Shown here piece after piece: positions 500 through 61,779 of a stretch of DNA of 64,000 nucleotides. Position 1 is the first letter of the stretch; each line of letters opens with the position of its first letter. Below the pieces are notes generated by a model. It was not told the origin of the DNA. It made no database searches and saw nothing but the letters and a program-made list of their open reading frames with translations. The stretch covers positions 744,001-808,000 of the forward strand of contig OZ251247.1 of the NCBI GenBank assembly GCA_965240325.2, given 5' to 3'. This DNA comes from Rebecca billardiae RCC1528 (taxonomy: Eukaryota > Protista > Haptophyta). A program made the translations under genes and the position numbers.

Positions 500-2002
500 A
501 TGACCGACGCCGGGGCTCACAGCGAGAACGCGCGGTGGCTGACTGACCTGCCCGTCGAGATGATCGAGCGGGTGCTCGTCGTTCTGCAGCAGCAAGACCT
601 CGCCGCCGCCAACGCCGCCTCGCGCCTCTTCCGCGGCGCGCCCGGCGGCCACTCGCCGGTCGAGCACGCGCTGCGCGCTCGCGCGCGCGCGCACGGGCTC
701 GAGCGCGCCATCCCGACGGCCCTCCCGCCGGGCGTGTGCACGTGGACGGCCGAGCTACTGGCGCTGCTGCGCACGCACGAGCTCGCGCGCGCGCACGCGG
801 CCGTCGTCGCGTGCTCGCGCGACGCGTGCGGCGAATACGACTGCGCCTTCAGCGCGTTTGTGGACGCGGAGGGCGGGCTGCACACGTGCGGCGAGGAGGA
901 GGTGCGGGGCGACGACGGGGAGCCGACGGGTGGGATCGCTCCTCCGCCGGCGCTGGGCCTCTTGGACGCACCCGCCGTCGTGGTGCCGACGCGCGTCGCC
1001 TCGCTCTGCGCGGTGCGCGTGCGTGCGGTGGCAGCTGGCTACCACCACCTGCTCGCGCTGAGTGACGCCGGTGCCGTGTACGGCTGCGGCCAAAGTGACA
1101 TAGGCCAGCTCGGGCTGGGTGACAAGACCACGCGTCGGGCATTCGAGCCGATACGTGGCTTGGAGCCCCAGCTGGTCGTGTGCATTGCCGCCGGCTTCAA
1201 GCACAGCCTCGCGCTCACCGCAGCTGGGTGCGCGTACAGCTGGGGCTACAACCACTTTGGCCAGCTCGGTCTCTGCGACAGGGAGGACCGGTGGGAGCCG
1301 GCGCGCATCGAGGCACTGGCCGGCGTGCGCGTGGGTGCGCTGGCAGCGGGGGTCGACCACACGCTGCTGCTGTCCATCGCTGGCGCTGTCTACTCGTGCG
1401 GCTACGGCAAGTGCGGCCAGCTCGGCCACGGCGATGGGCAGCATATGCACACGCCGAGGCGCATCAAGGCGCTCGCTGGCGTGCGCGCCGTGCACGTGTG
1501 CGCGGGTGACACGCACAGCCTGGTGCTCGACAGGGAGGGTGGCGTGCACTCCTTTGGCGGCGGCACCGATGGCTGCCTCGGCCAAGGGGACACTGGCGAT
1601 AGGTTCAAGCCGGCGCGCGTCGAGGCGCTGGCGGGCGTGCGTGCCGTGCGCGCCAGCTGTGGCCCTGTCAGCAGCGCTGTGCTGGGCGTGGACGGCGGCG
1701 TGCACGCGTTCGGGCGCAACGAGCATGGCGCGCTCGGCCTGGGCGGCGCTCCACAAAGCCTTTTGCCCACCCGCGTGCAGGTGGGAGCGGGCGCGCGCGT
1801 GGTGGGCGCTTCACTCGGTGGCGTGCACGCGCTGTACGTCACTGCGGGCGGTGAGGCGCACGTGTGCGGCTGGCGATCTGCTGCGCTCGGCCTCGGCATG
1901 AGCGCGGCGTCGGAGGAGGGCGTGGCTCAGGGCGACAGTGGCATCGACACGAGTACGCCCACACGCGTAGCGCATCTTCAGCTGCGTGACCTGCAGGGCT
2001 AG
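500..2002 (+). CDS. F-box + RCC1-repeat protein, copy 1
   Basis: F-box-like LTDLPVEMIERVLVVLQQQDLAAANAASRLFR followed by seven RCC1 repeats (GxNxxGQLG, AAGxxH). Upstream in-frame ATG at 383 is an alternative start. Confidence 0.9.
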   Translation: MTDAGAHSENARWLTDLPVEMIERVLVVLQQQDLAAANAASRLFRGAPGGHSPVEHALRARARAHGLERAIPTALPPGVCTWTAELLALLRTHELARAHAAVVACSRDACGEYDCAFSAFVDAEGGLHTCGEEEVRGDDGEPTGGIAPPPALGLLDAPAVVVPTRVASLCAVRVRAVAAGYHHLLALSDAGAVYGCGQSDIGQLGLGDKTTRRAFEPIRGLEPQLVVCIAAGFKHSLALTAAGCAYSWGYNHFGQLGLCDREDRWEPARIEALAGVRVGALAAGVDHTLLLSIAGAVYSCGYGKCGQLGHGDGQHMHTPRRIKALAGVRAVHVCAGDTHSLVLDREGGVHSFGGGTDGCLGQGDTGDRFKPARVEALAGVRAVRASCGPVSSAVLGVDGGVHAFGRNEHGALGLGGAPQSLLPTRVQVGAGARVVGASLGGVHALYVTAGGEAHVCGWRSAALGLGMSAASEEGVAQGDSGIDTSTPTRVAHLQLRDLQG

Positions 2003-2165
2003 TGTGAGGGGCTGGGGACCGGGCCACTGGCGTGCCAGCAGTGATCTCCGGTCGGATGGCGCAACTGGGCACTGGCAGACGACTGGCTGCCAGTCTGATG
2101 ATCGGAATGACTCTGCCTCCTTCCTGTCCAAGGGCGTTCCCGGGATCCTGCCACACGCTCCCGAA

Positions 2166-2196
2166 AGCAATGCCCCCCCCTGGGGGGGGCATTGCT
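2166..2196. repeat. Perfect 15-bp-arm hairpin AGCAATG-C8-T-G8-CATTGCT
   Basis: Read directly from the sequence; 1-nt loop. Confidence 0.9.
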
Positions 2197-2415
2197 ACCG
2201 GACTGGCGCGGGCCGTAATCAAATGTACCCGCTTGAAATAGAGGAAAGCAATTTCAATAGGAACGCGGTTCGATTTGGCGTTTGACCAGTGCGGGGAACG
2301 CCCCTGCAGCGAAATGTTGGCTGTGTCCAGCTTGGGAGTCCGTTGGCCACGAACTATTGTACTGATGACGAAGCCGTCGATGAAGCGCGGTCCGCCCGAC
2401 GACCAGTGCGCGACG

Positions 2416-3951
2416 ATGACGCTTATTCGCAAGGAGCACGCACGGTGTGCACCCGCGGCGCTGTGCCTCGCGGGCATTCCGCCCGAGGTCATCGAGCGCA
2501 TTCTCGTGAGCGTGCCCGAGCTACCCGCTCTGCTGGCCGCCAACGCCACGGCGCGCCTCTTCCGCGGCGCGCCGGGCGGGCGCTCGCCCGTCGAGCACGC
2601 GCTGCGCGCTCGTGCGCGCGCGCGCGGCCTCGAGCGCGCCATCCCGACGGCCCTCCCGCCGGGCGCGTGCACGTGGACGGCCGAGCTCTTGGCGCTGCTG
2701 CGCACGCACGAGCTGGCGCGTTCGCACGCGGCCGTCGTCGCCTGCTCACGTTGGACGAGCACGCACTACCATTGCGCGTTCAGCGCGTTTGTGGACGCGG
2801 AGGGCGGGCTGCACACGTGCGGCGAGGAGGAGGCGCTGGACGAGGACACCTGGCTGCCGACGGGAGAGTTCGTAGGAGCATCGGCGCTGGGCCACGCTGA
2901 TGCGGCCGTGGTCGTGGTGCCGACGCGCGTGGCCTCGCTCTCCGCGGTGCGCGTGGTCGCAGTCGCTGCTGGGTGGTGGCACCTGCTCGCGCTGAGCGAC
3001 GGTGGCGTCGTGTACGGCTGCGGCCGAAATGACACAGGCCAGCTCGGACTGGGGGACACTGCCACGCGCCGGGCGTTCGAGCTGATACGCGGCCTGGAGC
3101 CCCAGCTCGTCGCATGTATTGCCGCAGGCGGTTTGCACAGCCTCGCGCTCACCTCCGCTGGCGGTGCGTACAGCTGGGGCAACAACTGGGACGGCCAGCT
3201 CGGCCACGGCGACACGAAGGAGCGGTGGGAGCCGACGCGCATCGAGGCGCTGGGCGGCGTGCGCGTGGGTGCGCTGGCAGCAGGAGTCGACCACACGCTG
3301 CTGCTCTCGATCGGTGGAGCCGTCTACTCGTGCGGCGATGGCAACTCGGGCCGTCTCGGCCACGGCGACGAGCAGGATCAGTGCACGCCGAGGCGCATCG
3401 AGGCGCTTGTGGGCGTGCAGGCCGTGCACGTGAGCGCCGGTGCTTATCACAGCCTGGTGGTGGATGCAGACGGCAGCGTGCGTTTCTTCGGCTCTGGTGA
3501 GCGAGGTTGCCTCCGCCTCGGGGGCACTGCCAGTCGGCTCGAGCCGATGCGCGTCGAAGCCCTTGCAGGCGTGCGTGGCGTGCGCGCGTGCGCCGGCTTC
3601 CAGTGCAGTGTGGTGGTGGGAGCAGACGGCAGCGTGCACGCGCTTGGGGACAACAGGCATGGCTCACTCGGCTTGGGCTGCGCTACGCAAAGCCTGCGCC
3701 CCGCGCGCGTGCAGGTGGGAGTGGGCGCGCGCGTCATGGGCGCATCGCTCGGCGGGGCGCACACGCTGTACGTCACGGCGGACGGGCAGGCGCACGCGTG
3801 CGGTCTGCAATCGGGAGCGCTCGGCCTCGGACTGAGTGTGGTGCCGGAGGAGCTGGAGGGCGTGGCGCAGGGCGACGCCATGGGCACGAGGGCGCCCTCG
3901 CGTGTTGCACATCTTCAGCTGCGCCGGCAGGGCCAGTGGCAGTGTATGTAG
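2416..3951 (+). CDS. F-box + RCC1-repeat protein, copy 2
   Basis: Same architecture. Start MTLIRKEH chosen by homology to copy 5; alternative ATGs at 2365 and 2380. Confidence 0.9.
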   Translation: MTLIRKEHARCAPAALCLAGIPPEVIERILVSVPELPALLAANATARLFRGAPGGRSPVEHALRARARARGLERAIPTALPPGACTWTAELLALLRTHELARSHAAVVACSRWTSTHYHCAFSAFVDAEGGLHTCGEEEALDEDTWLPTGEFVGASALGHADAAVVVVPTRVASLSAVRVVAVAAGWWHLLALSDGGVVYGCGRNDTGQLGLGDTATRRAFELIRGLEPQLVACIAAGGLHSLALTSAGGAYSWGNNWDGQLGHGDTKERWEPTRIEALGGVRVGALAAGVDHTLLLSIGGAVYSCGDGNSGRLGHGDEQDQCTPRRIEALVGVQAVHVSAGAYHSLVVDADGSVRFFGSGERGCLRLGGTASRLEPMRVEALAGVRGVRACAGFQCSVVVGADGSVHALGDNRHGSLGLGCATQSLRPARVQVGVGARVMGASLGGAHTLYVTADGQAHACGLQSGALGLGLSVVPEELEGVAQGDAMGTRAPSRVAHLQLRRQGQWQCM

Positions 3952-4183
3952 TGCCCGTGACGCGATGATGGCACTGCCTCCACGGGTCCTGCCACAACCT
4001 TGCACCGAACCTGAAGAGTGAAGACAGTGATGATGTGACGAACGAGGCTCCGACTGACGTCGTCGTTCTGGTTCCGGTGCGCTTGACAAGCCGTCCTGCA
4101 GCGGGACTAATTGATTGGCTCGTGATTCGTCGCGCGGGGCGGATCCCCCGATCGAGGCGCGGAAGCTCGGGCGCCTGCGCGAG

Positions 4184-5701
4184 ATGGCCCCCCGCAAGGA
4201 GCACGCACCGCGCGCACCGGCGGCGTTGTGCCTCGCGGACTTGCCACCCGAGGTCATCGCGCGCATACTCGCGAGCGTGCGCGAGCTGCCCACTCTGCTG
4301 GCCGCCAATGCCACGGCGCGCCTCTTCCGCGGCGCGCCTGGCGGCCGCTCGCCGGTCGAGCACGCGCTCCGTGCTCTCGCGCGCGCGCGCGGGCTCGAGC
4401 GCGCCATCCCGACGGCCCTCCCGCCGGGCGCGTGCACGTGGACGGCCGAGCTGCTGGCGCTCTTGCGCACGCACTCGCTGGCGCGCGCGCACGTGGCCGC
4501 CGTCGCCTGCTCGCCCGACGCATGCGACGAGTTCCATTGCTCGTTCAGCGCGCTTGTGGACGCGGAGGGCGGGCTGCACACGTGCGGCGAGGAGGAGGCG
4601 CTGGACGAGGACGAGGACACCTCGGAGGCGTCGGCAGAGTACGTGTTCGTTGCGCCGCCGGCGCTGGGGCACGCGGATGCGCCCGCCGTCGTGGTGCCGA
4701 CGCGCGTCGCCTCTCTCAGCGCGGTGCGCGTGGCCGCGGTGGCCGCCGGCGCCTCCCACCTGCTCGCGCTGAGCGAGGCCGGCGCGGTGTACGGCTGCGG
4801 CGAGAACGAGCACGGCCAGCTCGGGCTAGGGGACACTGACAAACGCCGGGTGTTCGAGCTGGTCCGCGGCTTGGAGCTCCAGCTCGTCGTGTGCATCGCC
4901 GCAGGCGTCGAGCACAGCCTCGCGCTCACCGCCGCTGGGTGCGCGTACAGCTGGGGCAACAACAGCTCCGGCCAGCTCGGCCACGGCGACACGACGAGCC
5001 GGCTGGAGCCGACGCGCATACAGGCGCTGACCGGCGTGCGCGTGGGCGGGGTGACCGGCGGGGGCGACCACACGCTGCTGCTCTCTCTCTCAGGCGCGGT
5101 GTACGCGTGTGGCTGCGGCATGGATGGCCAGCTGGGCCACGGCGGCGATGAGAACGAGCGCACGCCGAGGCGCGTCGAGGCGCTCGCGGGCGTGCGCGCC
5201 GTGCACGTGAGCGCGGGCCTGCAGCACAGCCTGGTGGTGGACGCGGAGGGCGGCGTGCACTCCTTCGGAGAAGGGCACACTGATCGGCAGCTCGAGCCCA
5301 CGCGCATCGACGCGCTTGCGGGCGTGCGCGCAGTGCGCGCGTGCGCCGGCAGCAGGAGCAGCGCGGTGCTGGGCGCGGACGGCAGCGTGCACACGTTCGG
5401 GGACAACGAGCACGGCTTGCTCGGCCTGGGCGGCGCCACGCAAAGCCAATCGCCCACACGCGTGCAGATGGGGCCGGGCGCCTGCGTGGTGGGCTGCGCG
5501 CTCGGCGGTGACCACGCGCTGTACGTCACGGCGGACGGTGCCGCGCACTCGTGCGGCCGGCGGTGTGCGGCGCTCGGCCTCGGCGTGAGCCTGGGGCAGG
5601 AGGAGGGCGGGGTGCAGGGCGACACCATCGACACACAGACGCCCACGCGCGTTGCGACTGTGCCTCTGCTGAGGCATGGTCAGCAGGGGCTGGTGGGGTA
5701 A
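4184..5701 (+). CDS. F-box + RCC1-repeat protein, copy 3
   Basis: MAPRKEH...LADLPPEVIARIL F-box; RCC1 repeats; short blade 5 (FGEGHTDRQLEPTR). Confidence 0.9.
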   Translation: MAPRKEHAPRAPAALCLADLPPEVIARILASVRELPTLLAANATARLFRGAPGGRSPVEHALRALARARGLERAIPTALPPGACTWTAELLALLRTHSLARAHVAAVACSPDACDEFHCSFSALVDAEGGLHTCGEEEALDEDEDTSEASAEYVFVAPPALGHADAPAVVVPTRVASLSAVRVAAVAAGASHLLALSEAGAVYGCGENEHGQLGLGDTDKRRVFELVRGLELQLVVCIAAGVEHSLALTAAGCAYSWGNNSSGQLGHGDTTSRLEPTRIQALTGVRVGGVTGGGDHTLLLSLSGAVYACGCGMDGQLGHGGDENERTPRRVEALAGVRAVHVSAGLQHSLVVDAEGGVHSFGEGHTDRQLEPTRIDALAGVRAVRACAGSRSSAVLGADGSVHTFGDNEHGLLGLGGATQSQSPTRVQMGPGACVVGCALGGDHALYVTADGAAHSCGRRCAALGLGVSLGQEEGGVQGDTIDTQTPTRVATVPLLRHGQQGLVG

Positions 5702-6096
5702 CTGCCCCTGTGCGTCGATCACTACCACGGCTGATTGCTACTGCTAGCTGTGAGAGTTATTACTGCCTGCTTACTTACGGCCGACGTGTCATCAAGGCAT
5801 GCCTGGATGCCATCCCTGCTCCTAGCTAATAGTGCCGTTGGTGGTCGTGTGAAGAGTCCGACGTGTAGCCTATAGTACCACGGTTGGGCCGCGGCGCTGC
5901 CCCCGGTTGAGTCACCGTCCGCCGCCTGCTCGATCTTGATGACGACGATCGAATGACGATGAGTAGCTACGGACTGACTGTACGGTAGTCAATGGGATGA
6001 CTCCGCCCGAGCCTCGTCTGGTGGCGGTGCGACAGTCAACTTGGCACCGGATACTCGCCCAAGCGCGCGGACGACGACCAAGTGCGCGGCGGCGAG

Positions 6097-7626
6097 ATGG
6101 CCACCTGCAAGGAGCACGCACTGCGCGCATCGGCGGCGCTGTGCCTCGCCGACATGCCGCCCGAGGTCATCGAGCGCATACTCGTGAGCGTTCCCGAGCT
6201 GCCCGCGCTGCTGGCTGCCAACGCCACGGCCCGCCTCTTCCGCGGCGCGCCGGGCGGCCGCTCGCCGGTCGAGCACGCGCTTCGCGCTCGCGCGCGCGCG
6301 CGCGGACTCGAGCGCGCCATCCCGAGCGCTCTCCCGCCGGGCGCTTGCACGTGGACGGCCGAGCTCACGGCGCTGGTACGCACGCACGAGCTGGCGCGTG
6401 CGCACGCGGCCGTGGTCGCCTGCTGCACGCGCTGGGCGCGGGCGTGCATGTTCAGCGCGTTTGTGGACGCGGAGGGCGGGCTGCACACGTGCGGCGAGGA
6501 GGAGGAGAAGGACGAGGGCACCTTGCAGCCGACGGGAGAGTTCGTAGGAGCATCGGCGCTGGGCCACGCTGATGCGGCCGTGGTCGTGGTGCCGACGCGG
6601 GTGGCCTCGCTGTCCGCGGTGCGCATGGTTGCGGTGGCCGCCGCGGATAGCCACCTGCTCGCGTTGAGCGACGCAGGCGCCGTGTACGGCTGCGGCGAGA
6701 ACGGCAACGGCCAGCTCGGGCTGGGGGACTCGCTGGCGCGCCATTCGTTCGACGTCGTCGGGGCTCTGCGTGCCGACATGATCGTGGCGGTCTCGACTGG
6801 CGGTGCGCACAGCCTCGCGCTCACAGCAGCTGGGTGTGCGTACAGCTGGGGCTTCAACGGCTTCGGCCAGCTCGGCCACGGCGACACGAAGGACCGGTGG
6901 GAGCCGGCGCGCATCGAGGCGCTGGACGGCGTGCGCGTGGGTGGAGTGGCGGCGGGGGACACGCACACGCTGCTGCTCTCGCTCGACGGCGCTATCTTCT
7001 CGTGTGGCGACGGCGAGGCTGGCCAGCTCGGCCTAGGCGACGAGCAGGATCAGTACACGCCGAGGCGCATCAAGGCGCTCGCGGGCGTGCGCGCCGTGCA
7101 CGTGGGCGCGGGCTACACGCACAGCCTGGTGCTCGACGCGGAGGGCGGCGTGCACTCCTTTGGCGACGGCACCGATGGCTGCCTCGGCCACGGGAACACT
7201 GGCGGTCAGCTCGAGCCGGCGCGAGTCGAGGCGCTGGCGGGCGTGCGGGCAGTGCGTGCGTGCGCAGGCTACGACAGCAGTGCTGTGCTGGGTGCGGACG
7301 GCAGCGTGCACACGTTTGGGTGCAACCGGCACGGCTCACTCGGCCCGGGCGGCGGCGTGCAGCGCCTACTGCCCACCCGCATGCAGGTGGGGGCGGGCGC
7401 GCGCGTGGTGGGCGTTGCTCTCGGCGGGCAGCACGCGCTGTACGTCACGGCTGACGGTGCCGCGCACTCGTGCGGCCGGCGGTGTGCGGCGCTCGGCCTC
7501 GGCGTGAGCCTGACGCCGGAGGAGGGCGGGGTGCAGGGCGACGCCATTGGCACGAGTACGCCCACGCGCATCGCGCATCTTCAGCTGCCTCTGCAGGGCC
7601 AGTGTCAGGGGCTAGGGTGCCCGTGA
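6097..7626 (+). CDS. F-box + RCC1-repeat protein, copy 4
   Basis: MATCKEH...LADMPPEVIERIL; seven RCC1 repeats. Confidence 0.9.
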   Translation: MATCKEHALRASAALCLADMPPEVIERILVSVPELPALLAANATARLFRGAPGGRSPVEHALRARARARGLERAIPSALPPGACTWTAELTALVRTHELARAHAAVVACCTRWARACMFSAFVDAEGGLHTCGEEEEKDEGTLQPTGEFVGASALGHADAAVVVVPTRVASLSAVRMVAVAAADSHLLALSDAGAVYGCGENGNGQLGLGDSLARHSFDVVGALRADMIVAVSTGGAHSLALTAAGCAYSWGFNGFGQLGHGDTKDRWEPARIEALDGVRVGGVAAGDTHTLLLSLDGAIFSCGDGEAGQLGLGDEQDQYTPRRIKALAGVRAVHVGAGYTHSLVLDAEGGVHSFGDGTDGCLGHGNTGGQLEPARVEALAGVRAVRACAGYDSSAVLGADGSVHTFGCNRHGSLGPGGGVQRLLPTRMQVGAGARVVGVALGGQHALYVTADGAAHSCGRRCAALGLGVSLTPEEGGVQGDAIGTSTPTRIAHLQLPLQGQCQGLGCP

Positions 7627-7977
7627 GTGGCTGAGCAGTGCGATGATGACACTGAGGCGGTTGCCGCCTCCATCCTGGATCACACTTTCACAGTGTGAGT
7701 GATGACGACAGTGATGCAGTCTGATGCTGCTGCCTGCTCGGTGTAGTGTGTTCCGATGCCTGTCGCTATTGCGTGCTGCTGCATGGGGCGCGGTGGCTGC
7801 TTGCTTCGAGCCCGCCTGCGTTCATGACGACGAATCGTGTGCTGTCCTTGAAAGTTGAAGTAGTCGAGTCCTTGCCTGCTCCCTAAGTCCAGGGGGGGGG
7901 GCTCCCCGCCCCCGAACCGGGGCCGAAGTCCGTTGGCCCCGAATTGACGAAGCGCGGGCGGCGACGACCAGTGCGCG

Positions 7978-9588
7978 ATGACGCTTCGCAAGGAGCACGC
8001 ACGGTGTGCACCCGCGGCGCTGTGCCTCGCGGACATGCCGCCCGAGGTCATCGAGCGCATTCTCGTGAGCGTGCCCGAGCTACCCGTTCTGCTGGCCGCC
8101 AACGCCACGGCGCGCCTCTTCCGCGGCGCGCCGGGCGGCCGCTCTCCGGTCGAGCACGCGCTGCGCGCTCGCGCGCGCGCGAGCGGGCTCGAGCGCGCCA
8201 TCCCGACGGCCCTCCCGCCGGGCGTGTGCACGTGGACGGCCGAGCTCTTGGTGCTGCTGCGCACGCACGAGCTGGCGCGTTCGCACGCGGCCGTCGTCGC
8301 CTGCTCGCGCGACGCGGGCGACGACGACGAGTTCAGCTTGTTCAGCGCGTTTGTGGACGCGGAGGGCGGGCTGCACACGTGCGGCGAGGAGGCAGAGTGG
8401 GGCGAGATCGGGGAGCCGACGGGTCGGATCGCTCCTCCGCCGGCGCTTGGTCTCTTGGACGCACCCGCCGTCGTGGTGCCGACGCGCGTCGCCTCCCTGA
8501 GCGATGTTCGCGTGGTCTCGGTGGCCGCTGGCTACACCCATCTGCTCGCACTGAGCGAGGCCGGCGCCGTGTACGGCTGTGGCTACCACAGCTGCGGCCA
8601 GCTCGGGCTGGGGGACGATGAGACGCGGCGCTCGTTCGTCGAGGTCTACCCGCTCGCGCGCGAGCTCGTCGTCGCGATCGCCGCGGGCGCCTGCCACAGC
8701 CTCGCCCTCACCTCCGCTGGCTGCGCGTACAGCTGGGGCCGCAACGAGTGGAACCAGCTCGGCCACGGCGACAGGAAGGAGCGGTGGGAGCCGACGCGCA
8801 TCGAGGCGCTGGACGGCGTGCGCGTGGCTGGGGTCGCAGCAGGGGACGGCCACACGCTGCTGCTGTCCATCGCTGGCTCCGTCTACTCCTGCGGGTACGG
8901 CTACTACGGCCAGCTCGGCCACGGCGACGAGCAGGATCAGCACACGCCGAGGCGCATCGCTGCGCTTGCGAGCGTGCGCGCCGTGCACGTGAGCGCGGGC
9001 AGGCTGCACAGCCTGGTGGTGGACGCGGAGGGCGGCGTGCACTCCTTCGGAGAAGGGCACACTGATCGACAGCCTGAGCCAACGCGCATCGACGCGCTCG
9101 CTGGTGTGCGCGCAGTGAGTGCGTGTGCCGGCCCCTTCTGCAGCGCGGTGCTGGGCGCGGACGGCAGCGTGCACACGTTCGGGGCCAACGAACATGGCTT
9201 ACTCGGCCTGGGCTTACTCGGCCTGGGCGGCGCCACTCAAAGTCAGTTGCCCATACGCGTGCAGGTGGGAGCGGGCGCACGCGTGGTGGGCGCTTCACTC
9301 GGCGGCGCGCACGCCCTGTACGTCACTGCGGACGGTGGGGCGCACGCGTGCGGCATGCGCTCGGCTGCGCTCGGCCTCGGCGCAAGCCTGGGGCAGGAGG
9401 ATGGTGTGGTGCGGGGTGATGACATCATCGACACGAGGACGCCCATGCGCGTTGCCAGTCTGCCGCCGCTGCTGCATGGTCAGCAGGGGCTCGATGGGGC
9501 GGTAACCGTAACTGTCGATGGCCTCTGCGCGGACGCGGCAGCGCAGCGGGACGGGCACGACACGCAGGCGGGCACGGATCAGCAGTGA
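7978..9588 (+). CDS. F-box + RCC1-repeat protein, copy 5
   Basis: MTLRKEH...LADMPPEVIERIL; RCC1 repeats; same short blade 5 as copy 3; GLLGL duplication. Confidence 0.9.
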   Translation: MTLRKEHARCAPAALCLADMPPEVIERILVSVPELPVLLAANATARLFRGAPGGRSPVEHALRARARASGLERAIPTALPPGVCTWTAELLVLLRTHELARSHAAVVACSRDAGDDDEFSLFSAFVDAEGGLHTCGEEAEWGEIGEPTGRIAPPPALGLLDAPAVVVPTRVASLSDVRVVSVAAGYTHLLALSEAGAVYGCGYHSCGQLGLGDDETRRSFVEVYPLARELVVAIAAGACHSLALTSAGCAYSWGRNEWNQLGHGDRKERWEPTRIEALDGVRVAGVAAGDGHTLLLSIAGSVYSCGYGYYGQLGHGDEQDQHTPRRIAALASVRAVHVSAGRLHSLVVDAEGGVHSFGEGHTDRQPEPTRIDALAGVRAVSACAGPFCSAVLGADGSVHTFGANEHGLLGLGLLGLGGATQSQLPIRVQVGAGARVVGASLGGAHALYVTADGGAHACGMRSAALGLGASLGQEDGVVRGDDIIDTRTPMRVASLPPLLHGQQGLDGAVTVTVDGLCADAAAQRDGHDTQAGTDQQ

Positions 9589-13277: not shown

Positions 13278-14635
13278 TCAGCCGCCGCCATCGTCGTTCC
13301 CGTTGTCGCCGTCCGCGGATGACTCGGTGGCGGTCGTGCCGCTCGAGCTGGCCGCGTCGCCGTCGTCGTCGGATGACGAGTCGGAATCGTCGTCATCGTC
13401 GTCGTCGTCGTCGTCGGAGCTGTCGCCGTCCACGACGTCGTCGGAGGTCGTCGTCTCGTCGGTAGTGGCCTCCTCCTCCTCCTCCTCCTCCTCCTCCTCC
13501 TCCTCCTCCTCCTCCTCCTCCTCCTCCTCCGCGCTCGAGCTCGCGTCGATTGAAGAGCCGTCGCCTCGCTCCGCCGCCGCACCCGCACCCGCCAGCGGCC
13601 GGTCCAACGCCGCAGCCGACGCGTGCGCGCCGGCCGCCTCCAACGCGCCGGCAGCCTGCGCACCGTCCGCCGCGCCACCCGCCGCGGGCCGGCGGTCCGC
13701 GCCGAGCAGCGAGCTGCCGCCGCCGCCGCCGCCGCCGCCCTCGCGCGGAGCGTCGGCGGCGGTGGCGGCGCGCGCGGGCGGCGCGCGCGCAGGCGGCGGC
13801 AGGGGCGCGAGGTCCGGGCTGCGCGCGAGCGGGCTGCCGCGCGCCACCGGCGGCGAGGCGGAGGTCGAGGCAGCGGCGCCGGCGGCGGCGCCGGCGGCGG
13901 AGGGCTTGCGCCGCGCCGGCGGCGGCTGCGCGTGGCCCCGCGCGCGCTCGGCGCCGCCGCGCGCGCGCTCGGCGCCGCCGCCGCCCTCCGCCTCCGCCGC
14001 GGCGGCGCGCGCGGCGCGCTCGGCCTTGGCGTCGGCGGCGGCGACGGCGTCGTCGTACGCGCGCAGCCAGCGCTCGATCGCGCGCAGCGCGCTCCGCGCC
14101 GACGGCCGCCGCTCCGGGCTCGGCGCCGCCAGCCAGCGCACCAGCGCCGCCACGTGCGAGTGAACACCTGCCGGGAGATCGCCGCGGCGCGCGTCGGAAA
14201 GAGTCGAAATTCGTTCCATTTGGGTTCCGAACGGCGCGGCGTAGAGCTCGAGCGCGACGAGCCCCGTCGCGAACACGTCGACGGCGAAGTCGTACGGCCG
14301 CCCCGCCACGATCTCCGACGCCATGTACAGCGACGTGCCCACGCCGCCGGTGTGCTGCATCTCGATCTCGCGCGCGCGAGATTGCGCGGCCGCGGCGGCG
14401 AGCGCGGCCGCGTGCGCGCGCGTGCCGGGTGGGTGTGGTGACGAGTGGTGGCGGGAGAGGAGGGGCGGCGAGGCGCCGGGCGGCGCGCTCAGCGCGCTCA
14501 GCGGGGACAGCGGGCCCGCCGCGCCGCGCCCCTGCTCGCCAGGCGGCCCGCCGACGCCGCCGCTCTGCTCGCCGCCGCCATCGCCGCCGCCGTCCGCCGC
14601 AGCGTGCGCGTGCGCGTGCGCGTGCGCCGCCGCCG

Positions 14636-14676
<41 letters not shown>

Positions 14677-14801
14677 GGGCCGACGAGCGCGGCCTCGGCG
14701 AGCTTCGAGAGCCCAAAGTCGCCGATCTTGAACACGCGGCGCACGTGCAGCGGGTGGAACCCGCGCCGCGCGAACCGCCCCCCCGCGCCGCCGCCGCGCG
14801 A

Positions 14802-14842
<41 letters not shown>

Positions 14843-15513
14843 TGGCGCGTCGGTTACGCCACGGCAGCCCGCCGCCGCCCGCGGCCGTTACGGACGGCGA
14901 CTCGGCGGGCGCGAGGGAGAAGAAGATGTTTGCGGGCTTGAGGTCGCTGCGCGGTGTGTGTTCGGGGTAGGGTTGGGGGATAGGGTTAGGGCTAGGGGGA
15001 GGCGGTCAGGGCCCCCCACGGCCGCGCACGGCCGCGCGCCCTCGTCCGCCGCGCGCGCGGCCGCCGCCGCGCCATGCGCTTTCGGACCGCCCAGCCTGGC
15101 AGCTGCGCAGGGGCGCGCACCGGTGCAGCAGCCCGGAGGCGTGGATGTGGTCGAGACCGCACAGCACCTGCCGAACCACGTCGAGCTGCTCCGCCACGTG
15201 CTCCAGCTCGGCCAGCTCCTCGTCCGGACCGAGCCCATCCGGACTGAGCGCGGCCAAGCCACCGGCCGCGTCCGCGCCGCCGCCCCCGCCGCCGGCCGGC
15301 GCCGCCGCCTCGGCAGCGGGCGCGGCGGCGCGCGCCGCCGGCCGCGGGCGCGGCTGGCGCTCAGCGAGGAGTTGGGTGAGGGTGCCTGAGCAGAGCTGCA
15401 TCTGGATGTTGAGGACGAGCGCGCGCTCGGCGGGCGGCGGCGGGCCAGCGCTGCTCCCGCCCCACGCGGACGACGACGCACTGTCCGCCGCGCGCGCCCA
15501 TCGCGCCGCGCGC

Positions 15514-16247: not shown

Positions 16248-16288
<41 letters not shown>

Positions 16289-17069: not shown

Positions 17070-17114
<45 letters not shown>

Positions 17115-18139: not shown

Positions 18140-18182
<43 letters not shown>

Positions 18183-18403: not shown

Positions 18404-18436
<33 letters not shown>

Positions 18437-19000: not shown

Positions 19001-19039
<39 letters not shown>

Positions 19040-19040
19040 A

Positions 19041-50100: not shown

Positions 50101-50139
<39 letters not shown>

Positions 50140-52798: not shown

Positions 52799-54824
52799 GT
52801 GGCCCGCACAGGCTCGGGCGTCAACGCGGCGCGCCCCGCGCCGCGCTCGTGCGGCGTGGGTGTCCCTGGCAGGGCTGCCGTGCGCCACGCGAAGGGGGCT
52901 ATTCTGGGGCGTGCGCGGGGCTGCTCACGAGTTCGCACTTCGCATTATTGGCCGGGGCAATAATTCCCGCTAATGAGCGCGGTTCCCAGGGGTGGGTCGT
53001 CCTACCTGTGTCGTTAAATCATAGAATGGGTCCGAGCGGGAGTGAGGGAATCTCGTTCGGACGGACGAAACTTTGGGTCGTGCAATATTCAAGTGCCTGC
53101 ACCAGGGCCGGCCGGCCGGTCTCATTTTGACGAGAGCCACGGTACTGGTAAAATGCTGATTATGATTCCTGGTGCCAGCCGCCGCTGCCACCACCAGTAC
53201 AGTTTACTATGCGATTTAACGTGCATACAATACGTACCGCTCATGATCAGGCCCGATCATTGCGATGAGAATCCAATGAAGCTCACATTTCATGATCATA
53301 TTCGAAGGTTTACCCAATACCCATCATGGTAACAATCATCGCCATCATTCGTGATGAGGAATGATGGGTGTGGAGTTCTGGCTTCGTCGGCGTTCGTCGG
53401 CTTGCCGATTCCCGTCGGTTCAAGCGCGAAGCTCCGCTCCCTGAGAATGATCGCCTCCACACTGCACCCCTGCCCGTCACCCCACACCCGCGTCGTGCTC
53501 GTCGCTGGTGACGCCGCGCCTAGGATCAGCGCGCATGCGGGCGGCCCAACCGAATAAAGAAGAGAGGGCGAGCAGGCTGCTCCAATGGAGTCCAGTCCCT
53601 TCGCCGAGACGGCACTGAGCTGACCCGCAAAGGCACCCGTTGCGGCACTCTGCTACATTATCACGGGCGCCAGCGGGCCTGCCTGCCACTACTCGGAGCT
53701 CGGCCCCGCCGTGGCGACGATTCCCGCAGAACTGGTAGTGCCTAACGGTGTGGCCCGCTGAGACATCCCAGCAAAGGCTGGGCGTGCACAGTGGTCCAAG
53801 CGCACGCGTACACCGAGTGGCGTAGCCGATTGTGCAGCCCAGCAACAGTCCGACTCGGCCGACGACGGCGCCGAGCACGGCCCGGTATCTGCCCTTAGTA
53901 CGAGCCTTTGCAGTGCGCCAGTGCAAGCTCGTGCACGCACGGGCGGTTGCGCCATGCCTTCTGTCCGCCCGTGCGCGCGTCACAACAGCCCGCCATGGCG
54001 CGCAAGCCCGTTGCAGCAATGGCACGCTGGCCAGTTCCATCTGATGGCCCAGCGACAGCTCGCAGGGCTGAGCGGATTAGCGGAGCACTGTGTAGACCCG
54101 AGGTACCGAGTGCCACGATCTGCGAGTACTGTGGCAAGGGCAGTTGGCGTCGATGAGCCCAAGGCAGCGGAGGGGTGGCTGAGCTGCCTGTGCGTCGCGT
54201 GCCCCCAGTCTAATATTTGCTGCCTCTGCATGACCTGGCCTGTGGCCTGCGTGTGGCTGCCAACCCGGAGACAGGCGGAGTCCGCCGAAGCCGCCGCCCG
54301 ACGTCTGCGGGCGCCACGCCTGCCGGCGCAGATGCAGATAGCAGAGCTGCCTGGCCGAGCGTCATAGTGCTGTCCGTGGGCAGTTCGGCTGGCCAGCGTG
54401 CCGCGCTCGTGTCGGGACCGCTCGGCTAGTTGTGCCGCGCCGTCGACTGGTGCCTCGCCCGGGCCGGCCTGGCGCAAGCGGAAGGCGGAGAGGCGGCCGA
54501 GATGGTGCTACCGTTTGTTGATGAAAATAAGAGACGCACCCAGCTCAGGCAGGCGAGATTGACGCCCGCCAACTGTCTCCGCCCATGAAGCCGTCGCCGT
54601 GATAGCGCCGTCGGAAGCCCGATTCGTTCAGCGCATCAGCCCGGGGCTGCGGCCGCCTCGCGGCGTACAGTACAGTAGTACCGACCGGACTTCCGGCAGT
54701 CCGGGTTGCGTCATTTCTCGTCACCCTTGTGTGGCCGTGCATCTCGCGGTCGGGACCAACTGCCTGTATTGATCGGTTGACGACGTCGCGTGGCATCCCG
54801 GCGCGCGCGCAGCTCGCCGACGGC

Positions 54825-56333: not shown

Positions 56334-57833
56334 TCAGCGGAACGCGGTCCGCAGGGACCCGGCCAATGCAGGCGTGGCCACGTGGCTCGGCTCGTCGCCC
56401 ACAGCCACAGAGCCAAGGCCGAGGCCGAGCGCGCCACCCTGCTCTCCGCACGCGTACACGTCTCCGTCCGCCGTCTCAAACAGCGAGTGCCAGTTGCCCA
56501 TGGCGCAGCGCACCACGCGCGCGTGCACCAGGGCGGGCACGCGTGTCGGTGCCCGCTTGGCTTCTTCCGCGCGGCCCGTGCCCAGCTGGCCGTGCTTGTT
56601 GTCCCCAAACGTGTGCACGCTGCTGTCCGCGCCCAGCACCGCGCTGATCCAGTAGCCAGCGCACGCGCGCACTGCACGCACGCCCGCCAGCGCCTCGACG
56701 CGCTTGGGCACGAGCTGGGTGGCCTCGTCGCCGTGGCCGAGGGGACCGCCGTCGCCCCAGCCGAAGGAGTGCACGCTGCCCGCTGCGTCCACCACCAGGC
56801 TGTGCACGTAGCCCGCGCTCACGTGCAAAGCGCGCACGCCAGCGAGCGCCTCGATGCGCCTCGGCGTGAGCAGCTGCTCCTGCTCGTCGCCGTGGCCGAG
56901 CTGGCCGCAGATACCGACGCCGCACGAGTACACGGAGCCAGCTGTCGAGAGCAGCAGCGTGTGCCACCCCCCGCCAGAGATGCCGCCCACACGCACGCCG
57001 TCCAGCGCCTCGATCCGCGTCGGCTCCCACCGCTGCTCCGTGTCGCCGTGGCCGAGCTGGCCGGCGTCGTTGTCGCCCCAGCTGTACGCGCAGCCAGCGG
57101 CGGTGAGCGCGAGGCTGTGCTCGACGCCTGCTGCAATGCATACGACGAGCTCGGGCTCCAAGCCGCGTATCGACTCGAACGTCCGACGCGTGGCCGTGTC
57201 TCCCAGCCCGAGCTGGCCGTCGCAGTTCTCGCCGCAGCCGTACACGGCGCCGGCCTCGCTCAGCGCGAGCAGGTGGATGCGGCTAGCCGCCACGGAACGG
57301 ACGCGCACCGCGTCGAGCGAAGCGACCCGCGTCGGCACCACGACCGCGGGTGAATCCGCGTGGCCCAGCGCTGACGGCGCAGCGAGCTCATCCAGCGGCA
57401 ACTCGTCCTCGTCCAGCACCTCCTCCTCGCCGCACGTGTGCAGCCCGCCCTCCGCGTCCACAAACGCGCTGAAGTTGCCGCCGCACGCGATCGGGCTGGT
57501 GTGTACAGACGCCAGCGAGTGCACGGCCTCGAACTCGAGCAGCAACTCGGTCCACGTGCACGCGCTCGGCGGGAGCACGGCCGGCAGCGCGCGCGCGTGG
57601 CCCCGCGCGCGTGCGCGCCTGCGCAGCGCGTGCTCGACCGGCGAGCAGCCGCCGCTCGCGCCGCGGAAGAAGCGCGCCGTGGCGTTGGCGGCGGCGATGT
57701 CGCGTAGCTGCAGAAAGTCGAGCACTCGCTCGATGCTCTCAGTGGGCAGGCCGTCGAGCCCCGGCGCTGCAGACGTGCGAGCGACCGCCGAGCGTGCCCC
57801 GCTCTGGCGCCGCGCACTGTGCGTCGTCCCCAT
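56334..57833 (-). CDS. F-box + RCC1-repeat protein, copy 14 (inverted)
   Basis: MGTTHS...LDGLPTESIERVLDFLQLRDIAAANATARFFR; RCC1 repeats; ends SLRTAFR. The ORF-track extension to 58460 is antisense to copy 15. Confidence 0.88.
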   Translation of the reverse strand: MGTTHSARRQSGARSAVARTSAAPGLDGLPTESIERVLDFLQLRDIAAANATARFFRGASGGCSPVEHALRRRARARGHARALPAVLPPSACTWTELLLEFEAVHSLASVHTSPIACGGNFSAFVDAEGGLHTCGEEEVLDEDELPLDELAAPSALGHADSPAVVVPTRVASLDAVRVRSVAASRIHLLALSEAGAVYGCGENCDGQLGLGDTATRRTFESIRGLEPELVVCIAAGVEHSLALTAAGCAYSWGDNDAGQLGHGDTEQRWEPTRIEALDGVRVGGISGGGWHTLLLSTAGSVYSCGVGICGQLGHGDEQEQLLTPRRIEALAGVRALHVSAGYVHSLVVDAAGSVHSFGWGDGGPLGHGDEATQLVPKRVEALAGVRAVRACAGYWISAVLGADSSVHTFGDNKHGQLGTGRAEEAKRAPTRVPALVHARVVRCAMGNWHSLFETADGDVYACGEQGGALGLGLGSVAVGDEPSHVATPALAGSLRTAFR

Positions 57834-57954
57834 GGGAGCCGCGGCAACCAAAAGATTCCAGATTTCCAGGCTGAGGTTGCTCAGTGAGGTGTGACCAACC
57901 GTCGCCGCTGCCACTGCGGGGGCGCTCGGCGCCAAGCAAAGCCTCGCGGGCACG

Positions 57955-59679
57955 ATGGACTCGCCCATGGCGCTTGCGTCGACGCCAGGCGACGCCGCGT
58001 CTACTCGGCGTGGGGCGCATGAGCAGGCCAGCGCCTTGCAGCCGCTGGCGCTGCTCGCGGGCGGCGCGGAGGTGGCGGCTGGGACGGACGTCGCCATGGA
58101 AGCCGCCCCCTCATTCGGAGGCCGGGTCTGGGCGCAGTGCGGCAGCACGCCCGCGCTGGAGGCATCGGCCCCGGCGCTCGCAGCCCTGCCTCTCGACCTC
58201 ATCGTGCGCGTGCTCTCCCATCTCGGCAGCGCGCGTGACCTCGCCGCCGCCAACGCCGCCTCGCGCCTCTTCCGCGGCGCGCCCGGCGAGTGCTCGCCGG
58301 TCGAGCGCGCGCTGCGCGAGTGTGCGCGAGCGCGTGGGCACGAGCGTGCGCTGCCCGCGACGCTGCCGACCGGCGCGTGCACGTGGACGGAGGAGCTGCT
58401 GGGGCGCGAGCGTGTGCTCGAGCTGAGCGCGCCGCACTGCTGCGTCGTGGCGTGCAGCACTGGTTACGATGTCGACTTCAGCGCGTTTGTGGACGCGGAG
58501 GGCGGGCTGCACACGTGCGGCGAGGAGGTGGGGTGGGACGAGGACGGGCTGCGCACGGGCTTTTTGCACGCCGCTCTTGCGCATGGCGGAGATGCCGCTG
58601 CGCCGCCCGTGCTCGTGCCGACGCGCGTCGCCTCGCTCAGCGCAGTGCGCGTGCGCTCCGTGGCCGCAGGCAGTGACCACCTGCTCGCGCTGAGCGATGC
58701 TGGGACGGTGTACGCGTGCGGCGCCAACCGCTTCGGCCAGCTCGGGCTGGGGGACACGGGCACTCGGTGGGCGTTCGAGCTGATTCGTGGTCTGGAGGCC
58801 CAGCGCGTGGCATGCATAGCTGCTGGCTCCTACCACAGCCTCGCGCTCACCGCCGCTGGCTGCGCGTACAGCTGGGGCAACAATGGGCACGGCCAGCTCG
58901 GCCACGGCGATATTGAGTGCCGGCGGGAGCCGACACAAATCGAGGCGCTGGGCGGCGTGCGCGTGGCTGGGGTGGCCGCAGGGGACGGCCACATGCTGCT
59001 GCTGTCCATCGCTGGCTCAGTCTACTCGTGCGGCCACGGCAACTGCGGCCAGCTCGGCCACGGCGACCAGCAGGATCAGCACACGCCGAGGCGGATCGAG
59101 GCGCTCGCGGGCGTGCGCGCCGTGCACGTGAGCGCGGGCATGAGGCACAGCCTGGTGGTGGACGCGGATGGTGCCGTGCGCTCGTTCGGCTCGGGTACCC
59201 AGCACGAGCTTGGGCTCGGCGACACGCGTATGCAGGCGACGCCGACCCCCATCGAGGCCTTTGCAGCAGACGTGCGCGCCGTGCGCGCGTGCGCTGGCCG
59301 CTTCAGCAGTGCGGTGCTGGGCGCGGACGGCAGCGTGCACACGTTTGGGTCCAACTCGTGTGCCCAGCTAGGGCTTGGCCACGCGTCAGTTGTGCCGATG
59401 CCGACCTGTGTGCACGCCCTCTCGCGCGAGCGCGTGGTCGGCTGCGCACTCGGCGATGGGCACGCGCTGTACGTGACAGCTGAGGGCGCAGCGTACTCGT
59501 GCGGCCTGCAGACGGCAGCGCTCGGACACGGCGGCGCGCTTCCAGCGTCTGCGGTCGTCGTCAGCGTGCCGGCGGAATTCTTCGGCGATCCGTCTACTGT
59601 GGACGGCACGGCGGTGGCCACGCCCTTGCAGATCGCGCAGCTCCAGCCGCTGCTGCGCGGATGTTCGGTGGAGCAGTGA
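57955..59679 (+). CDS. F-box + RCC1-repeat protein, copy 15
   Basis: N-terminal extension, then LAALPLDLIVRVLSHLGSARDLAAANAASRLFR; RCC1 repeats. Confidence 0.9.
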   Translation: MDSPMALASTPGDAASTRRGAHEQASALQPLALLAGGAEVAAGTDVAMEAAPSFGGRVWAQCGSTPALEASAPALAALPLDLIVRVLSHLGSARDLAAANAASRLFRGAPGECSPVERALRECARARGHERALPATLPTGACTWTEELLGRERVLELSAPHCCVVACSTGYDVDFSAFVDAEGGLHTCGEEVGWDEDGLRTGFLHAALAHGGDAAAPPVLVPTRVASLSAVRVRSVAAGSDHLLALSDAGTVYACGANRFGQLGLGDTGTRWAFELIRGLEAQRVACIAAGSYHSLALTAAGCAYSWGNNGHGQLGHGDIECRREPTQIEALGGVRVAGVAAGDGHMLLLSIAGSVYSCGHGNCGQLGHGDQQDQHTPRRIEALAGVRAVHVSAGMRHSLVVDADGAVRSFGSGTQHELGLGDTRMQATPTPIEAFAADVRAVRACAGRFSSAVLGADGSVHTFGSNSCAQLGLGHASVVPMPTCVHALSRERVVGCALGDGHALYVTAEGAAYSCGLQTAALGHGGALPASAVVVSVPAEFFGDPSTVDGTAVATPLQIAQLQPLLRGCSVEQ

Positions 59680-60060
59680 GTCGGCACGGCACCGCGCGCA
59701 GGTGCGCAACTGCTGGACGACATTACAGAGGACTGTGGGCGTGGCCGCTACCACAATCATGCGGCATGGTCGGACATGGCGGGTCATACGGCTATGCTCT
59801 GCCAGCAACGCCGACTTCGTGTCGACGATTGGGCGCACTGCCGCCGCCGACGAATCAGGAGACCTGCGTCGTCGTCCTACCTGTGTCGTTAAATCATAGA
59901 TCGAATGAGCCCGCCCCGCCATAGACGGCAACCAGAGTGCATGCAGATTGCTGCTGGGGAGCCAACCGTCGTCGCACCGACGAAACTGGCTGATCGAGCG
60001 GGCTCGGTCGGGCCTACTTTCCGCCCTTTCAAGGTGCCGCTCACGCTGCTCGCGCGCACG

Positions 60061-61779
60061 ATGGATGCGCCCATGGCTCTTGCGTCGACGCCACGCGACG
60101 CAGCGTCTACTCGGCGTGGGGCGCAAGAGCAGATCGGTGCCTCGCAGGCGCGGGCGCAGCTCTCGGGTGGCGCGGGGGTGGCGGCTGGGACGGACGTCGC
60201 CATGGAAGCCGCCCCCTCATTCGGAGGCCAGGTCAGGCCGCAGTGCGGCAGCACACCTGCGCTGGAGGCATCGGCCCCGGCGCTCGCAGCCCTGCCTCTT
60301 GACCTCATCGTGCGCGTCCTCTCCCACCTCGGCAGTGCGCGTGACCTCGCCGCCGCCAACGCCGCCTCGCGCCTCTTCCGCGGCGCGCCCGGCGGGTGCT
60401 CGCCGGTCGAGCGCGCGCTGCGCGAGCGCGCGCGAGCGCGTGGGCACGAGCGTGCGCTGCCCGCGACGCTGCCGACCGGCTCACGCACGTGGCCGGAGGA
60501 GCTGCTGGGGCGCGAGCGTGTGCTCGAGCTGAGCGCGCCGCACTGCTGCGGCGTGGCGTGCAGCACTGCTGACGACGACGCTAGCTTCAGCGCGTTTGTG
60601 GACGCGGAGGGCGGGCTGCACACGTGCGGCGAGGAGAAGGAGGTGGACGAGGCCGGACAGCCGACGGGCGAGTATCGGGCGCCCCTGGCGATCGGCCACG
60701 CAGGTTCCCAGGAGGTGCGCGTGCCCACGCGCGTCGCCTCGCTCAGTGCAGTGCGTGTGATCGCAGTGGCCGCTGGTTGGGGCCACCTGCTCGCGCTGAG
60801 CGAGGCCGGCGCCGTGTACGGCTGCGGCGAGAACGAGTGCGGCCAGCTGGGCATGGGCGACAGGGAGAAGCGGTGGTCGTTCTCTCTGGTCGTCGCATTG
60901 CGAGGTGAGCACGCTGTGGGCATCTCGGCGGGCGGGCTCTCCAGCCTCGCGCTCACCGCCGCTGGGTGCGCGTACAGCTGGGGCTGCAACAGCTGGGGCC
61001 AGCTCGGCCACGGCGACAGGAAGGACCGATGGGAGCCGACGCGCATCGAGGCGCTGGACGGCGTGCGCGTGGGTGGAGTGGCCGCAGGGACCTCGCACAC
61101 GCTGCTGCTCTCGACAGCTGGCTCCGTGCACTCGTGCGGCATCGGTAGCTGCGGCCAGCTGGGCCACGGCGACGAGCAGGATCAGCACACGCCGAGGCGC
61201 ATCGAAGCGCTCACGGGCGTGCGCGCCGTGCACGTGAGCGCGGGCAATACCCACAGCCTGGTGGTGGACGCGGATGGCGCCGTGCATTCGTTCGGCTGGG
61301 GACGTGACGGGCAGCTGGGGCACGGCGACACGCGTATGCGGGCGACGCCCACCCCCATCGAGGCGCTGGCTGGTGTGCGCGCCGTGCGCGCGTGCACTGG
61401 CCGCTGCAGAAGTGCGGTGCTGGGCGCGGACGGCAGCGTGCACACGTTTGGGTCCAGCTGGTGTGCCCAGCTAGGGCTTGGCCACGCGTCAGTTGTGCCG
61501 ATGCCGACCTGTGTGCACGCCCTCTCGCGCGAGCGCGTGGTCGGCTGCGCACTCGGCGATGGGCACGCGCTGTACGTGACAGCTGACGGCGCAGCGTACT
61601 CGTGCGGCAAGCAGACGGCAGCGTTCGGCCACGGCGGCGCGCTTCCAGCGTCTGCAGTCGTCGTCAGCGTGCCGGCTGCGCACATTGGGTCCGATGTGGA
61701 CGGCGCAGCGGTGGCCACGCCCGCGCAGATCGCTCAGCTCCCGCCGCTGCTGCCTGGTGCAGCAGGGTCGATGGCGTAG
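60061..61779 (+). CDS. F-box + RCC1-repeat protein, copy 16
   Basis: Start MDAPMALAS chosen by homology to copy 15; shares N- and C-termini with copy 15 but has different central loops. Confidence 0.9.
   Translation: MDAPMALASTPRDAASTRRGAQEQIGASQARAQLSGGAGVAAGTDVAMEAAPSFGGQVRPQCGSTPALEASAPALAALPLDLIVRVLSHLGSARDLAAANAASRLFRGAPGGCSPVERALRERARARGHERALPATLPTGSRTWPEELLGRERVLELSAPHCCGVACSTADDDASFSAFVDAEGGLHTCGEEKEVDEAGQPTGEYRAPLAIGHAGSQEVRVPTRVASLSAVRVIAVAAGWGHLLALSEAGAVYGCGENECGQLGMGDREKRWSFSLVVALRGEHAVGISAGGLSSLALTAAGCAYSWGCNSWGQLGHGDRKDRWEPTRIEALDGVRVGGVAAGTSHTLLLSTAGSVHSCGIGSCGQLGHGDEQDQHTPRRIEALTGVRAVHVSAGNTHSLVVDADGAVHSFGWGRDGQLGHGDTRMRATPTPIEALAGVRAVRACTGRCRSAVLGADGSVHTFGSSWCAQLGLGHASVVPMPTCVHALSRERVVGCALGDGHALYVTADGAAYSCGKQTAAFGHGGALPASAVVVSVPAAHIGSDVDGAAVATPAQIAQLPPLLPGAAGSMA

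Follow-up and report, generated by a model that had tools for sequence, protein, structure and literature searches.

A tandem multigene family encoding putative F-box/RCC1 ubiquitin-ligase receptors with a diversified propeller face in a haptophyte genomic window

A 64,000-nucleotide stretch of Rebecca billardiae RCC1528 DNA (contig OZ251247.1, positions 744,001 to 808,000, forward strand; hereafter the window), with a G+C content of approximately 70%, contains 16 paralogous genes, each predicted to encode an F-box-like N-terminus, a helical linker and a seven-bladed propeller related to RCC1 and UVR8. We regard it as moderately probable that these genes belong to a lineage-specific multigene family of putative receptors of SCF (Skp1-cullin-F-box) ubiquitin ligases, in which the recognition face of the propeller has been diversified. 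The number of copies given in an earlier note on this DNA proved correct: six-frame open reading frames and their translations identified exactly 16 paralogues, and a tblastn search of the whole window with one of the copies detected no further family fragments. The paralogues form three blocks: five copies on the plus strand (block 1, 500-9588), eight on the plus strand (block 2, 24040-41518) and three (block 3, 56334-61779), the first of which lies on the minus strand and the other two on the plus strand. The individual copies are as follows:

c01, 500-2002, plus strand: intact F-box-like/RCC1 gene; another possible ATG at 383.
c02, 2416-3951, plus strand: intact.
c03, 4184-5701, plus strand: open frame; in-frame deletion of 8 residues in the loop between strands 3 and 4 (s3-s4) of blade 5.
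c04, 6097-7626, plus strand: intact.
c05, 7978-9588, plus strand: open frame; blade-5 deletion as in c03, 5-residue insertion in blade 6, longer C-terminal tail.
c06, 24040-25488, plus strand: intact.
c07, 25981-27420, plus strand: intact; nearly identical to c09, from which it differs by 2 loop residues.
c08, 29941-31410, plus strand: intact; 6-residue insertion following the blade-5 loop.
c09, 31899-33338, plus strand: intact.
c10, 33925-35367, plus strand: intact; 480 amino acids (aa); reference for the structure model.
c11, 35905-37347, plus strand: intact; 16 aligned nucleotide differences from c10, which are clustered.
c12, 37903-39345, plus strand: broken by an in-frame TGA (38623-38625); mosaic, with a 3' half almost identical to c07/c09.
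c13, 39930-41518, plus strand: broken by a frameshifting deletion at about 40847-40853; divergent C-terminal tail.
c14, 56334-57833, minus strand: intact; head-to-head with c15.
c15, 58096-59679, plus strand: intact; an ATG at 57955 would add an N-terminal extension.
c16, 60202-61779, plus strand: intact; other possible ATGs at 60061 and 59905.

The repeat unit has a spacing of 1.94-2.03 kb, all 16 copies look intronless, and the first 300 coding nucleotides of the eight central copies are 86-100% identical. Fourteen copies are uninterrupted, the remaining two being c12 (in-frame stop) and c13 (frameshift). The scaffold of c13 carries six private changes, compared to up to seven in intact copies, i.e. 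no pseudogene excess. A 2.4-kb spacer (27420-29940), without family homology and containing only short open frames, breaks the approximately 2-kb spacing between c07 and c08. For c15 and c16, an N-terminal extension of about 70-125 residues, absent from the other copies, is possible, and within 56334-59679 the long upstream open frames of c14 (56337-58463, minus strand) and c15 (57895-59676, plus strand) overlap.

The predicted domain layout is exemplified by c10:

33940-34038, plus strand: F-box-like motif (PF12937), residues 6-38.
34063-34203, plus strand: conserved helical linker, residues 47-93, with helices modelled at residues 47-58 and 76-93/97 by AlphaFold2 (AF2) and conservation throughout the family.
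34213-35337, plus strand: seven-bladed RCC1-like propeller, residues 97-471 (WD40_RLD, E = 1.7e-70).

Pfam analysis of five copies identified the RCC1-like domain PF25390 (E = 1e-66 to 1e-85) and PF00415 (E of about 1e-60), and the closest relative of solved structure by sequence was UVR8 (E = 8e-66). The AF2 model of c10, made from a 56-sequence alignment, has a mean predicted local distance difference test score (pLDDT) of 91.8 and a predicted template modelling (TM) score of 0.91; it contains 28 strands, which were assigned by hand to seven blades of four. When this model was compared with known structures using Foldseek, UVR8 was again the first match (TM 0.89-0.93, depending on the target), followed by the RCC1-like domains of HERC2 and HERC1, RPGR, RCC2 and RCC1. 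The combination of an F-box-like module with a seven-bladed RCC1 propeller, as described in the earlier note, is supported by Pfam, the AF2 model, and fold and profile matches.

Assignment of the N-terminal module is less clear-cut. When the 98 N-terminal residues of c10 were scanned alone, PF12937 (F-box-like) gave a marginal pass (25.4 bits, with a cut-off of 24.3), and among 30 family N-termini this model matched 18 and the classical F-box model PF00646 matched five. A profile of the family N-termini, compared with the sequences of the PDB, had F-box-containing proteins as all of its top 14 matches, aligned at their F-boxes; the best was FBXO22 (E = 2.6e-4) and others included FBXW7, FBXO4, cyclin F, FBXO31, GID2 and AnkB. 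The AF2 model of residues 1-98 (pLDDT 87) was matched by Foldseek to the Skp1-bound F-box and linker of Fbw7, then to FBXO4, Fbs1, FBG3 and FBXO31, and nine of the 13 first fold matches were Skp1-bound F-box proteins. We read this module as a putative F-box with a family-specific helical linker, ordered as in Fbw7, and the family as probably encoding SCF-type substrate receptors, i.e. putative Skp1 binders.

Comparison of the 16 copies revealed two variable loops per blade: the xx of a GxxH motif, located between strands 1 and 2 (s1-s2), and the x positions of G-x-N/G-x-x-G, located at the start of the long s3-s4 loop. In blade 2 of c10 the hypervariable codons are:

34426-34488, plus strand: blade-2 hypervariable codons, comprising the xx of GxxH (34426-34431) and G-x-N-x-x-G (34477-34488).

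The motif lists compiled previously (QSDI to ENEC in blade 2, YNHF to CNSW in blade 3, YGKC to HGNC in blade 4 and YH to SD for GxxH) all match the alignment. Each loop has 9-15 distinct variants among the 16 copies, and the 33-residue signature of the face is unique to every copy. These signatures differ between copies at 15-26 residues, the exceptions being two recent sets (c07/c09/c12 and c10/c11) in which the closest pairs have 2-5 differences. Mean column entropy reaches 1.93 in the s1-s2 loops and 1.50 in the first five residues of the s3-s4 loops, compared to 0.20-0.94 in the strands and 0.68-0.73 in the loops of the opposite face. The s1-s2 and s3-s4 loop classes make up 52 of 362 sites and contain 18 of the 21 sites assigned to the fast class with a posterior above 0.9 (Fisher p = 4e-14); two more are found at the end of s3-s4. 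Loop length hardly varies among the copies. The variable sites had also been described as rich in W/Y/F/H and charged residues, and D, S, C, R, Y, E, H, W and F are indeed abundant there.

In a blade of four antiparallel strands, one side carries the 1-2 and 3-4 loops and the opposite side the 2-3 and 4-1 loops; since both variable loops are on the same side, the variable sites would share one face of the propeller. The alignment to UVR8 obtained with HMMER places the xx of GxxH at the WR of GWRHT (W233/R234 type); in G-x-N-x-x-G, the first x corresponds to W198/W250 and the third x to the D96 type. These UVR8 positions are its known dimer-interface and chromophore residues, and a check of the numbering against the aligned chain was consistent with this. 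The single face proposed in the earlier note is therefore supported by strand topology and by homology to UVR8.

The copies are mosaics generated by gene conversion. The nearest neighbor of a copy switches between successive 60-codon segments, and six segment trees fit the data better than a single tree by about 795 log-likelihood units. Copies c15 and c16, for instance, share 96-98% identity at their ends and 71% in blades 2-3. The 16 differences between c10 and c11 are clustered (P = 0.0017), and one cluster identifies a short tract in the F-box region of c11 that corresponds exactly to the haplotype of c08:

36018-36033, plus strand: short gene-conversion tract in c11, with five nucleotides within 16 identical to the c08 haplotype in a gene that is otherwise c10-like.

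Another cluster, four changes within 10 nucleotides with identical flanks, converts DNGY to NNCH in the blade-2 loop (in the hypervariable codons of blade 2, c10 differs from c11 at 34427 and at four nucleotides in 34477-34486). More generally, changes in loop codons affect all three codon positions and in part come as short patches. In five low-divergence pairs, which are not independent of each other, 24% of loop codons have changed, compared to 7% of scaffold codons, and changes of two or three nucleotides account for 31% of the changed loop codons, compared to 13% in the scaffold. This pattern fits the product expected from exchange of short segments between paralogues; where the scaffolds are nucleotide-identical and only the loops differ, the ends of exchange tracts would be invisible and loop codons alone would seem to change.

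In the broken copy c12, the otherwise invariant GGC CAG that follows the variable codons of blade 3 reads TGA CGG (38620-38628; three of six nucleotides altered at once). The change directly adjoins the hypervariable patch, as if the patch event had overrun into the scaffold.

The composition of the loop sites departs strongly from that expected from base composition: proline amounts to 0.4%, compared to an expected 12.5%, and W, Y, F and C together amount to 23%, compared to an expected 6.5%. D, S, C, Y, W, H and F are enriched, and Ala, Leu and Val are depleted. First-position G+C is 0.52 in loops and 0.75 in the scaffold, and G+C at third codon positions (GC3) is 0.86. In 25 metagenomic relatives (sharing a common N-terminus; median identity 71%) the same positions are variable, the two variable loop classes reaching entropies of 2.30 and 1.93, with values below 1 elsewhere. 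Their loops also resemble those of the window in composition, with 8.5% Tyr (0.2% in the scaffold), 8.0% Phe (1.4% in the scaffold), 0.3% Pro and enriched Asp. Since the loop composition is non-neutral and the second lineage is alike, selection maintaining diversity on the putative binding face is likely and is favored over neutrality. One related F-box/RCC1 gene of this second lineage was located on metagenome contig L003 (P0002; 4646-6709), which also carries a Macro-domain gene, and not in a tandem array.

The substitution process was analyzed with our own GY94-F3x4 likelihood code (not PAML), with branch lengths fixed up to scale from nucleotide GTR+G trees and with the six segment trees used in site models to absorb recombination; micro-conversion violates the assumptions of all tree-based tests used, our own included. 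The pooled scaffold has a silent rate (alpha) of 1 and a replacement rate (beta) of 0.2, its beta/alpha being 0.20-0.35 (0.35 in the F-box and linker and 0.27 in the propeller scaffold), and the scaffold is thus under purifying selection. Loop beta is about ten times scaffold beta. In a tree-free comparison, the non-synonymous divergence (dN) of motif-defined loop codons exceeded the synonymous divergence (dS) of the scaffold in each of the 120 pairs (median dN 1.30, median dS 0.41), and loops still differ (proportion of non-synonymous differences, pN, 0.285) where the 25 flanking codons on each side have a proportion of synonymous differences (pS) below 0.02. With a single synonymous rate, the models M1a/M2a gave twice the log-likelihood difference (2dlnL) of 99.6, with a dN/dS ratio (omega) of 3.6 at 7% of sites; M7/M8 gave 153.8, and M8a/M8 gave 90.3, with omega of 2.65 at 10% of sites.

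Several results weigh against our interpretation, and most of these bear on an explanation in which the loops are neutral and concerted evolution does the rest: the loop side chains would be unconstrained, conversion and codon bias would homogenize the scaffold, silent sites included, and the diverged loops would escape and thereby merely look hypervariable, with no part played by selection for diversity. Pooled loop sites have an alpha of 3 and a beta of 2, and the resulting beta/alpha (0.67) is not different from 1. In a free alpha-by-beta mixture the fast class lies at alpha 2 and beta 2, and forbidding beta above alpha costs a 2dlnL of only 4.8. This low value does not stem from low power, because four data sets simulated on these trees with true selection (M2a estimates) gave 23-60 in the same test. 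Conversely, four sets simulated from the fitted mixture, without any class of beta above alpha, reproduced the single-rate signal (M1a/M2a 2dlnL of 24-84, omega 3.1-4.1); the M2a and M8 values are no proof of positive selection, because heterogeneity of the synonymous rate alone gives such values. The earlier note had proposed a loop dN/dS above 1 as a check of its reading: the ratio rises above 1 under one synonymous rate and ceases to do so once this rate is allowed to vary, and a site-specific omega above 1 at the loops is accordingly not robust and not established. In addition, GC3 is such that silent sites may be non-neutral, and the neutral rate is uncertain, because in several pairs the divergence of the non-coding flanks matches that of the loops.

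Rates alone leave room for neutral loops on a scaffold homogenized by conversion and codon bias; it is the composition that argues against neutrality, being far from the mutational expectation in both lineages. The almost perfect conservation of loop length points the same way. At a distance of up to three codons from a loop, conserved codons show a silent alpha of only 0.75 (other propeller codons, 1), compared to 3 in loop codons, so the elevated silent rate is a property of the loop codons. Furthermore, conversion tracts covering a loop would homogenize it unless opposed, and a large family with a constrained scaffold is hard to explain if its canonical binding face is irrelevant. Taken together, we consider neutral loops unlikely, though by no means negligible as an explanation. 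A regional mutational hot spot or an island of deep coalescence was considered separately and found insufficient, given the low silent rate of the conserved codons near the loops.

The remaining alternatives accept a diversified propeller and differ as to its role. The N-terminus might be a degenerate F-box relic or some other helical module, with the propellers serving, e.g., as regulators of GTPases or as scaffolds. Scans of the whole protein keep PF12937 below its cut-off (a marginal result of approximately 22 bits, with 32 of 47 profile positions covered), the Foldseek matches of residues 1-98 to solved F-boxes are not significant (E = 0.28-0.9, TM up to 0.49), and the tryptophan usual in the third helix of F-boxes is a phenylalanine in the family. 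Set against this are the pass of the isolated N-terminus and the matches of its homologs to both F-box models, the uniform F-box identity of the best PDB profile matches, the prevalence of Skp1-bound proteins among the fold matches, the Fbw7-like layout of F-box, helical linker and propeller, and the fact that RCC1 propellers have repeatedly been joined to ubiquitin-ligase modules (HERC, RCBTB, FBXO24); we consider a role outside SCF ligases improbable. A repertoire for self-recognition (of gametes, mating partners or in allorecognition, like the S-locus F-box proteins) would fit these data as well as any other diversified recognition function. Systems of the S-locus type consist of a limited set of genes at one locus, and nothing in the window ties the family to a mating locus, which makes this a very improbable role. 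Finally, UVR8 was the top match by both sequence and fold, which might suggest UV-B photoreceptors of the UVR8 type. The chromophore tryptophans of GWRHT correspond to the hypervariable xx, where tryptophan occurs in only a few copies and blades, and the probability of such a function is close to nil; photoreceptor identity was rejected, as the conserved Trp triad is missing.

On the SCF-receptor interpretation, the variable face of the propeller would be the ligand-binding face, and the family would offer many binding specificities to one ubiquitin-ligase core. The diversity may have arisen from point changes together with exchange of loop segments between paralogues, for which the nucleotide-invariant scaffold could have provided homology anchors, and it would be kept by selection for diversity. 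The ligands might, speculatively, be proteins of viruses or other parasites. A more far-reaching version, in which short-tract conversion swaps loop cassettes among hundreds of paralogues to build a combinatorial, anticipatory repertoire of antiviral ubiquitin-ligase receptors, appears to us doubtful. If true, such a cassette-swapping repertoire would amount to a germline counterpart, on an RCC1 propeller, of systems in which gene conversion diversifies receptors.

A protein of the same two-domain architecture is known in vertebrates. FBXO24 (F-box plus RCC1) co-immunoprecipitates SKP1, CUL1 and RBX1 (PMC10932545), and an F-box/RCC1 protein can therefore be an SCF receptor. FBXO24 differs from the present family in being a single conserved gene with housekeeping-type targets and no array; its cluster was ranked only 11th in an Atlas feature search, as a match of architecture. 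Other RCC1 propellers are coupled to ligase modules of the HECT and BTB types. Among the former, HERC5 and HERC6 carry an RCC1-like propeller (also found among the fold matches) on a ligase for ubiquitin-like modifiers and are interferon-induced and antiviral. The RCC1-like domain of HERC5 is under positive selection, and the rapidly evolving propeller residues are thought to face viral antagonists (PMC4021598). Unlike the present family, the HERC proteins have a HECT domain in place of the F-box and are encoded by one or few genes per genome, and their selected sites cluster in blades 1-2 instead of extending over all seven blades.

The closest parallel in genomic organization is offered by expanded F-box families. 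PMC8120010 reports positive selection in the substrate-binding domains of nematode F-box families and, citing Thomas 2006, describes large tandem families with a conserved F-box and a positively selected recognition domain in nematodes and plants. The corresponding features are present in the window, i.e. 16 tandem copies, a constrained F-box and scaffold, and a variable recognition domain; lineage-specific expansion and a proposed anti-pathogen role are further points of likeness. The recognition domains of the nematode and plant families are of the FTH, FBA, LRR or kelch type, whereas an RCC1 propeller is found here, with blade-periodic variation at approximately 30 positions on a nearly nucleotide-invariant scaffold. 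The host is, moreover, a unicellular alga, and the site-specific omega above 1 is not robust in our case. With regard to single components, UVR8 is the closest solved propeller and the variable positions are homologous to its dimer-interface and chromophore residues; it differs in lacking an F-box, and the family in lacking the conserved Trp triad. Fbw7/Cdc4 shares the order of F-box, helical linker and propeller and provides the top fold matches of the N-terminal module, but has WD40 blades and a fixed degron pocket and is encoded by conserved single genes.

A search of the literature on F-box plus RCC1 proteins in algae and haptophytes found no description of the family; a seeming match owed its RCC to strain numbers of a culture collection. 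What is new is the combination of an RCC1 propeller as variable scaffold, variation that is periodic over the seven blades, and a huge algal family. Almost nothing is known about the recognition of viruses or parasites in haptophyte-like algae; should the family prove to be a recognition repertoire, these organisms would have a candidate system of innate-immune receptors, and the rapid evolution of F-box adaptors known from nematodes and plants would have a parallel on a new scaffold and in a new eukaryotic branch. The analysis also holds a warning: in families that exchange short segments, M7/M8 and M1a/M2a report strong positive selection even when none has been simulated. Claims that members of the present family evolve faster than their silent sites need models aware of both recombination and synonymous-rate variation, or population data.

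The extent of the family was examined in public collections. The profile of the N-terminal module matched 635 clusters at E of 1e-3 or less and 219 at 1e-10 or less among 1.84 billion representatives, many of the clusters being fragments, and Atlas clusters combining F-box and RCC1 were mostly from haptophytes. An exact look-up of five window proteins in a public collection found none of them, and the best public homologs are only 38-52% identical. Viral contigs searched with one family protein contained no close relative, which is weak evidence against a viral origin.

The DNA surrounding the arrays contains several other open frames. Region 16000-20400 has a G+C content of 82.7% and includes a degenerate (CCG)n repeat (18789-19090) and a 1223-aa frame on the minus strand without a Pfam match; this frame is probably low-complexity sequence and not a real long gene. 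On the minus strand, a sequence with an MHYT sensor repeat (51440-52924, E = 1.6e-22) adjoins a 1321-aa open frame (47474-51436) that has no Pfam match at E of 0.001 or less, and Pfam detected neither HET nor TIR within 47474-52924. A match to the C-terminal half of the protein kinase domain is present at 13281-15005 (minus strand), and a partial match to a ubiquitin-conjugating enzyme (UQ_con, profile positions 30-68 only) at 21077-22999 (plus strand). Both fragments are presumably exons of spliced genes located between the F-box/RCC1 arrays.

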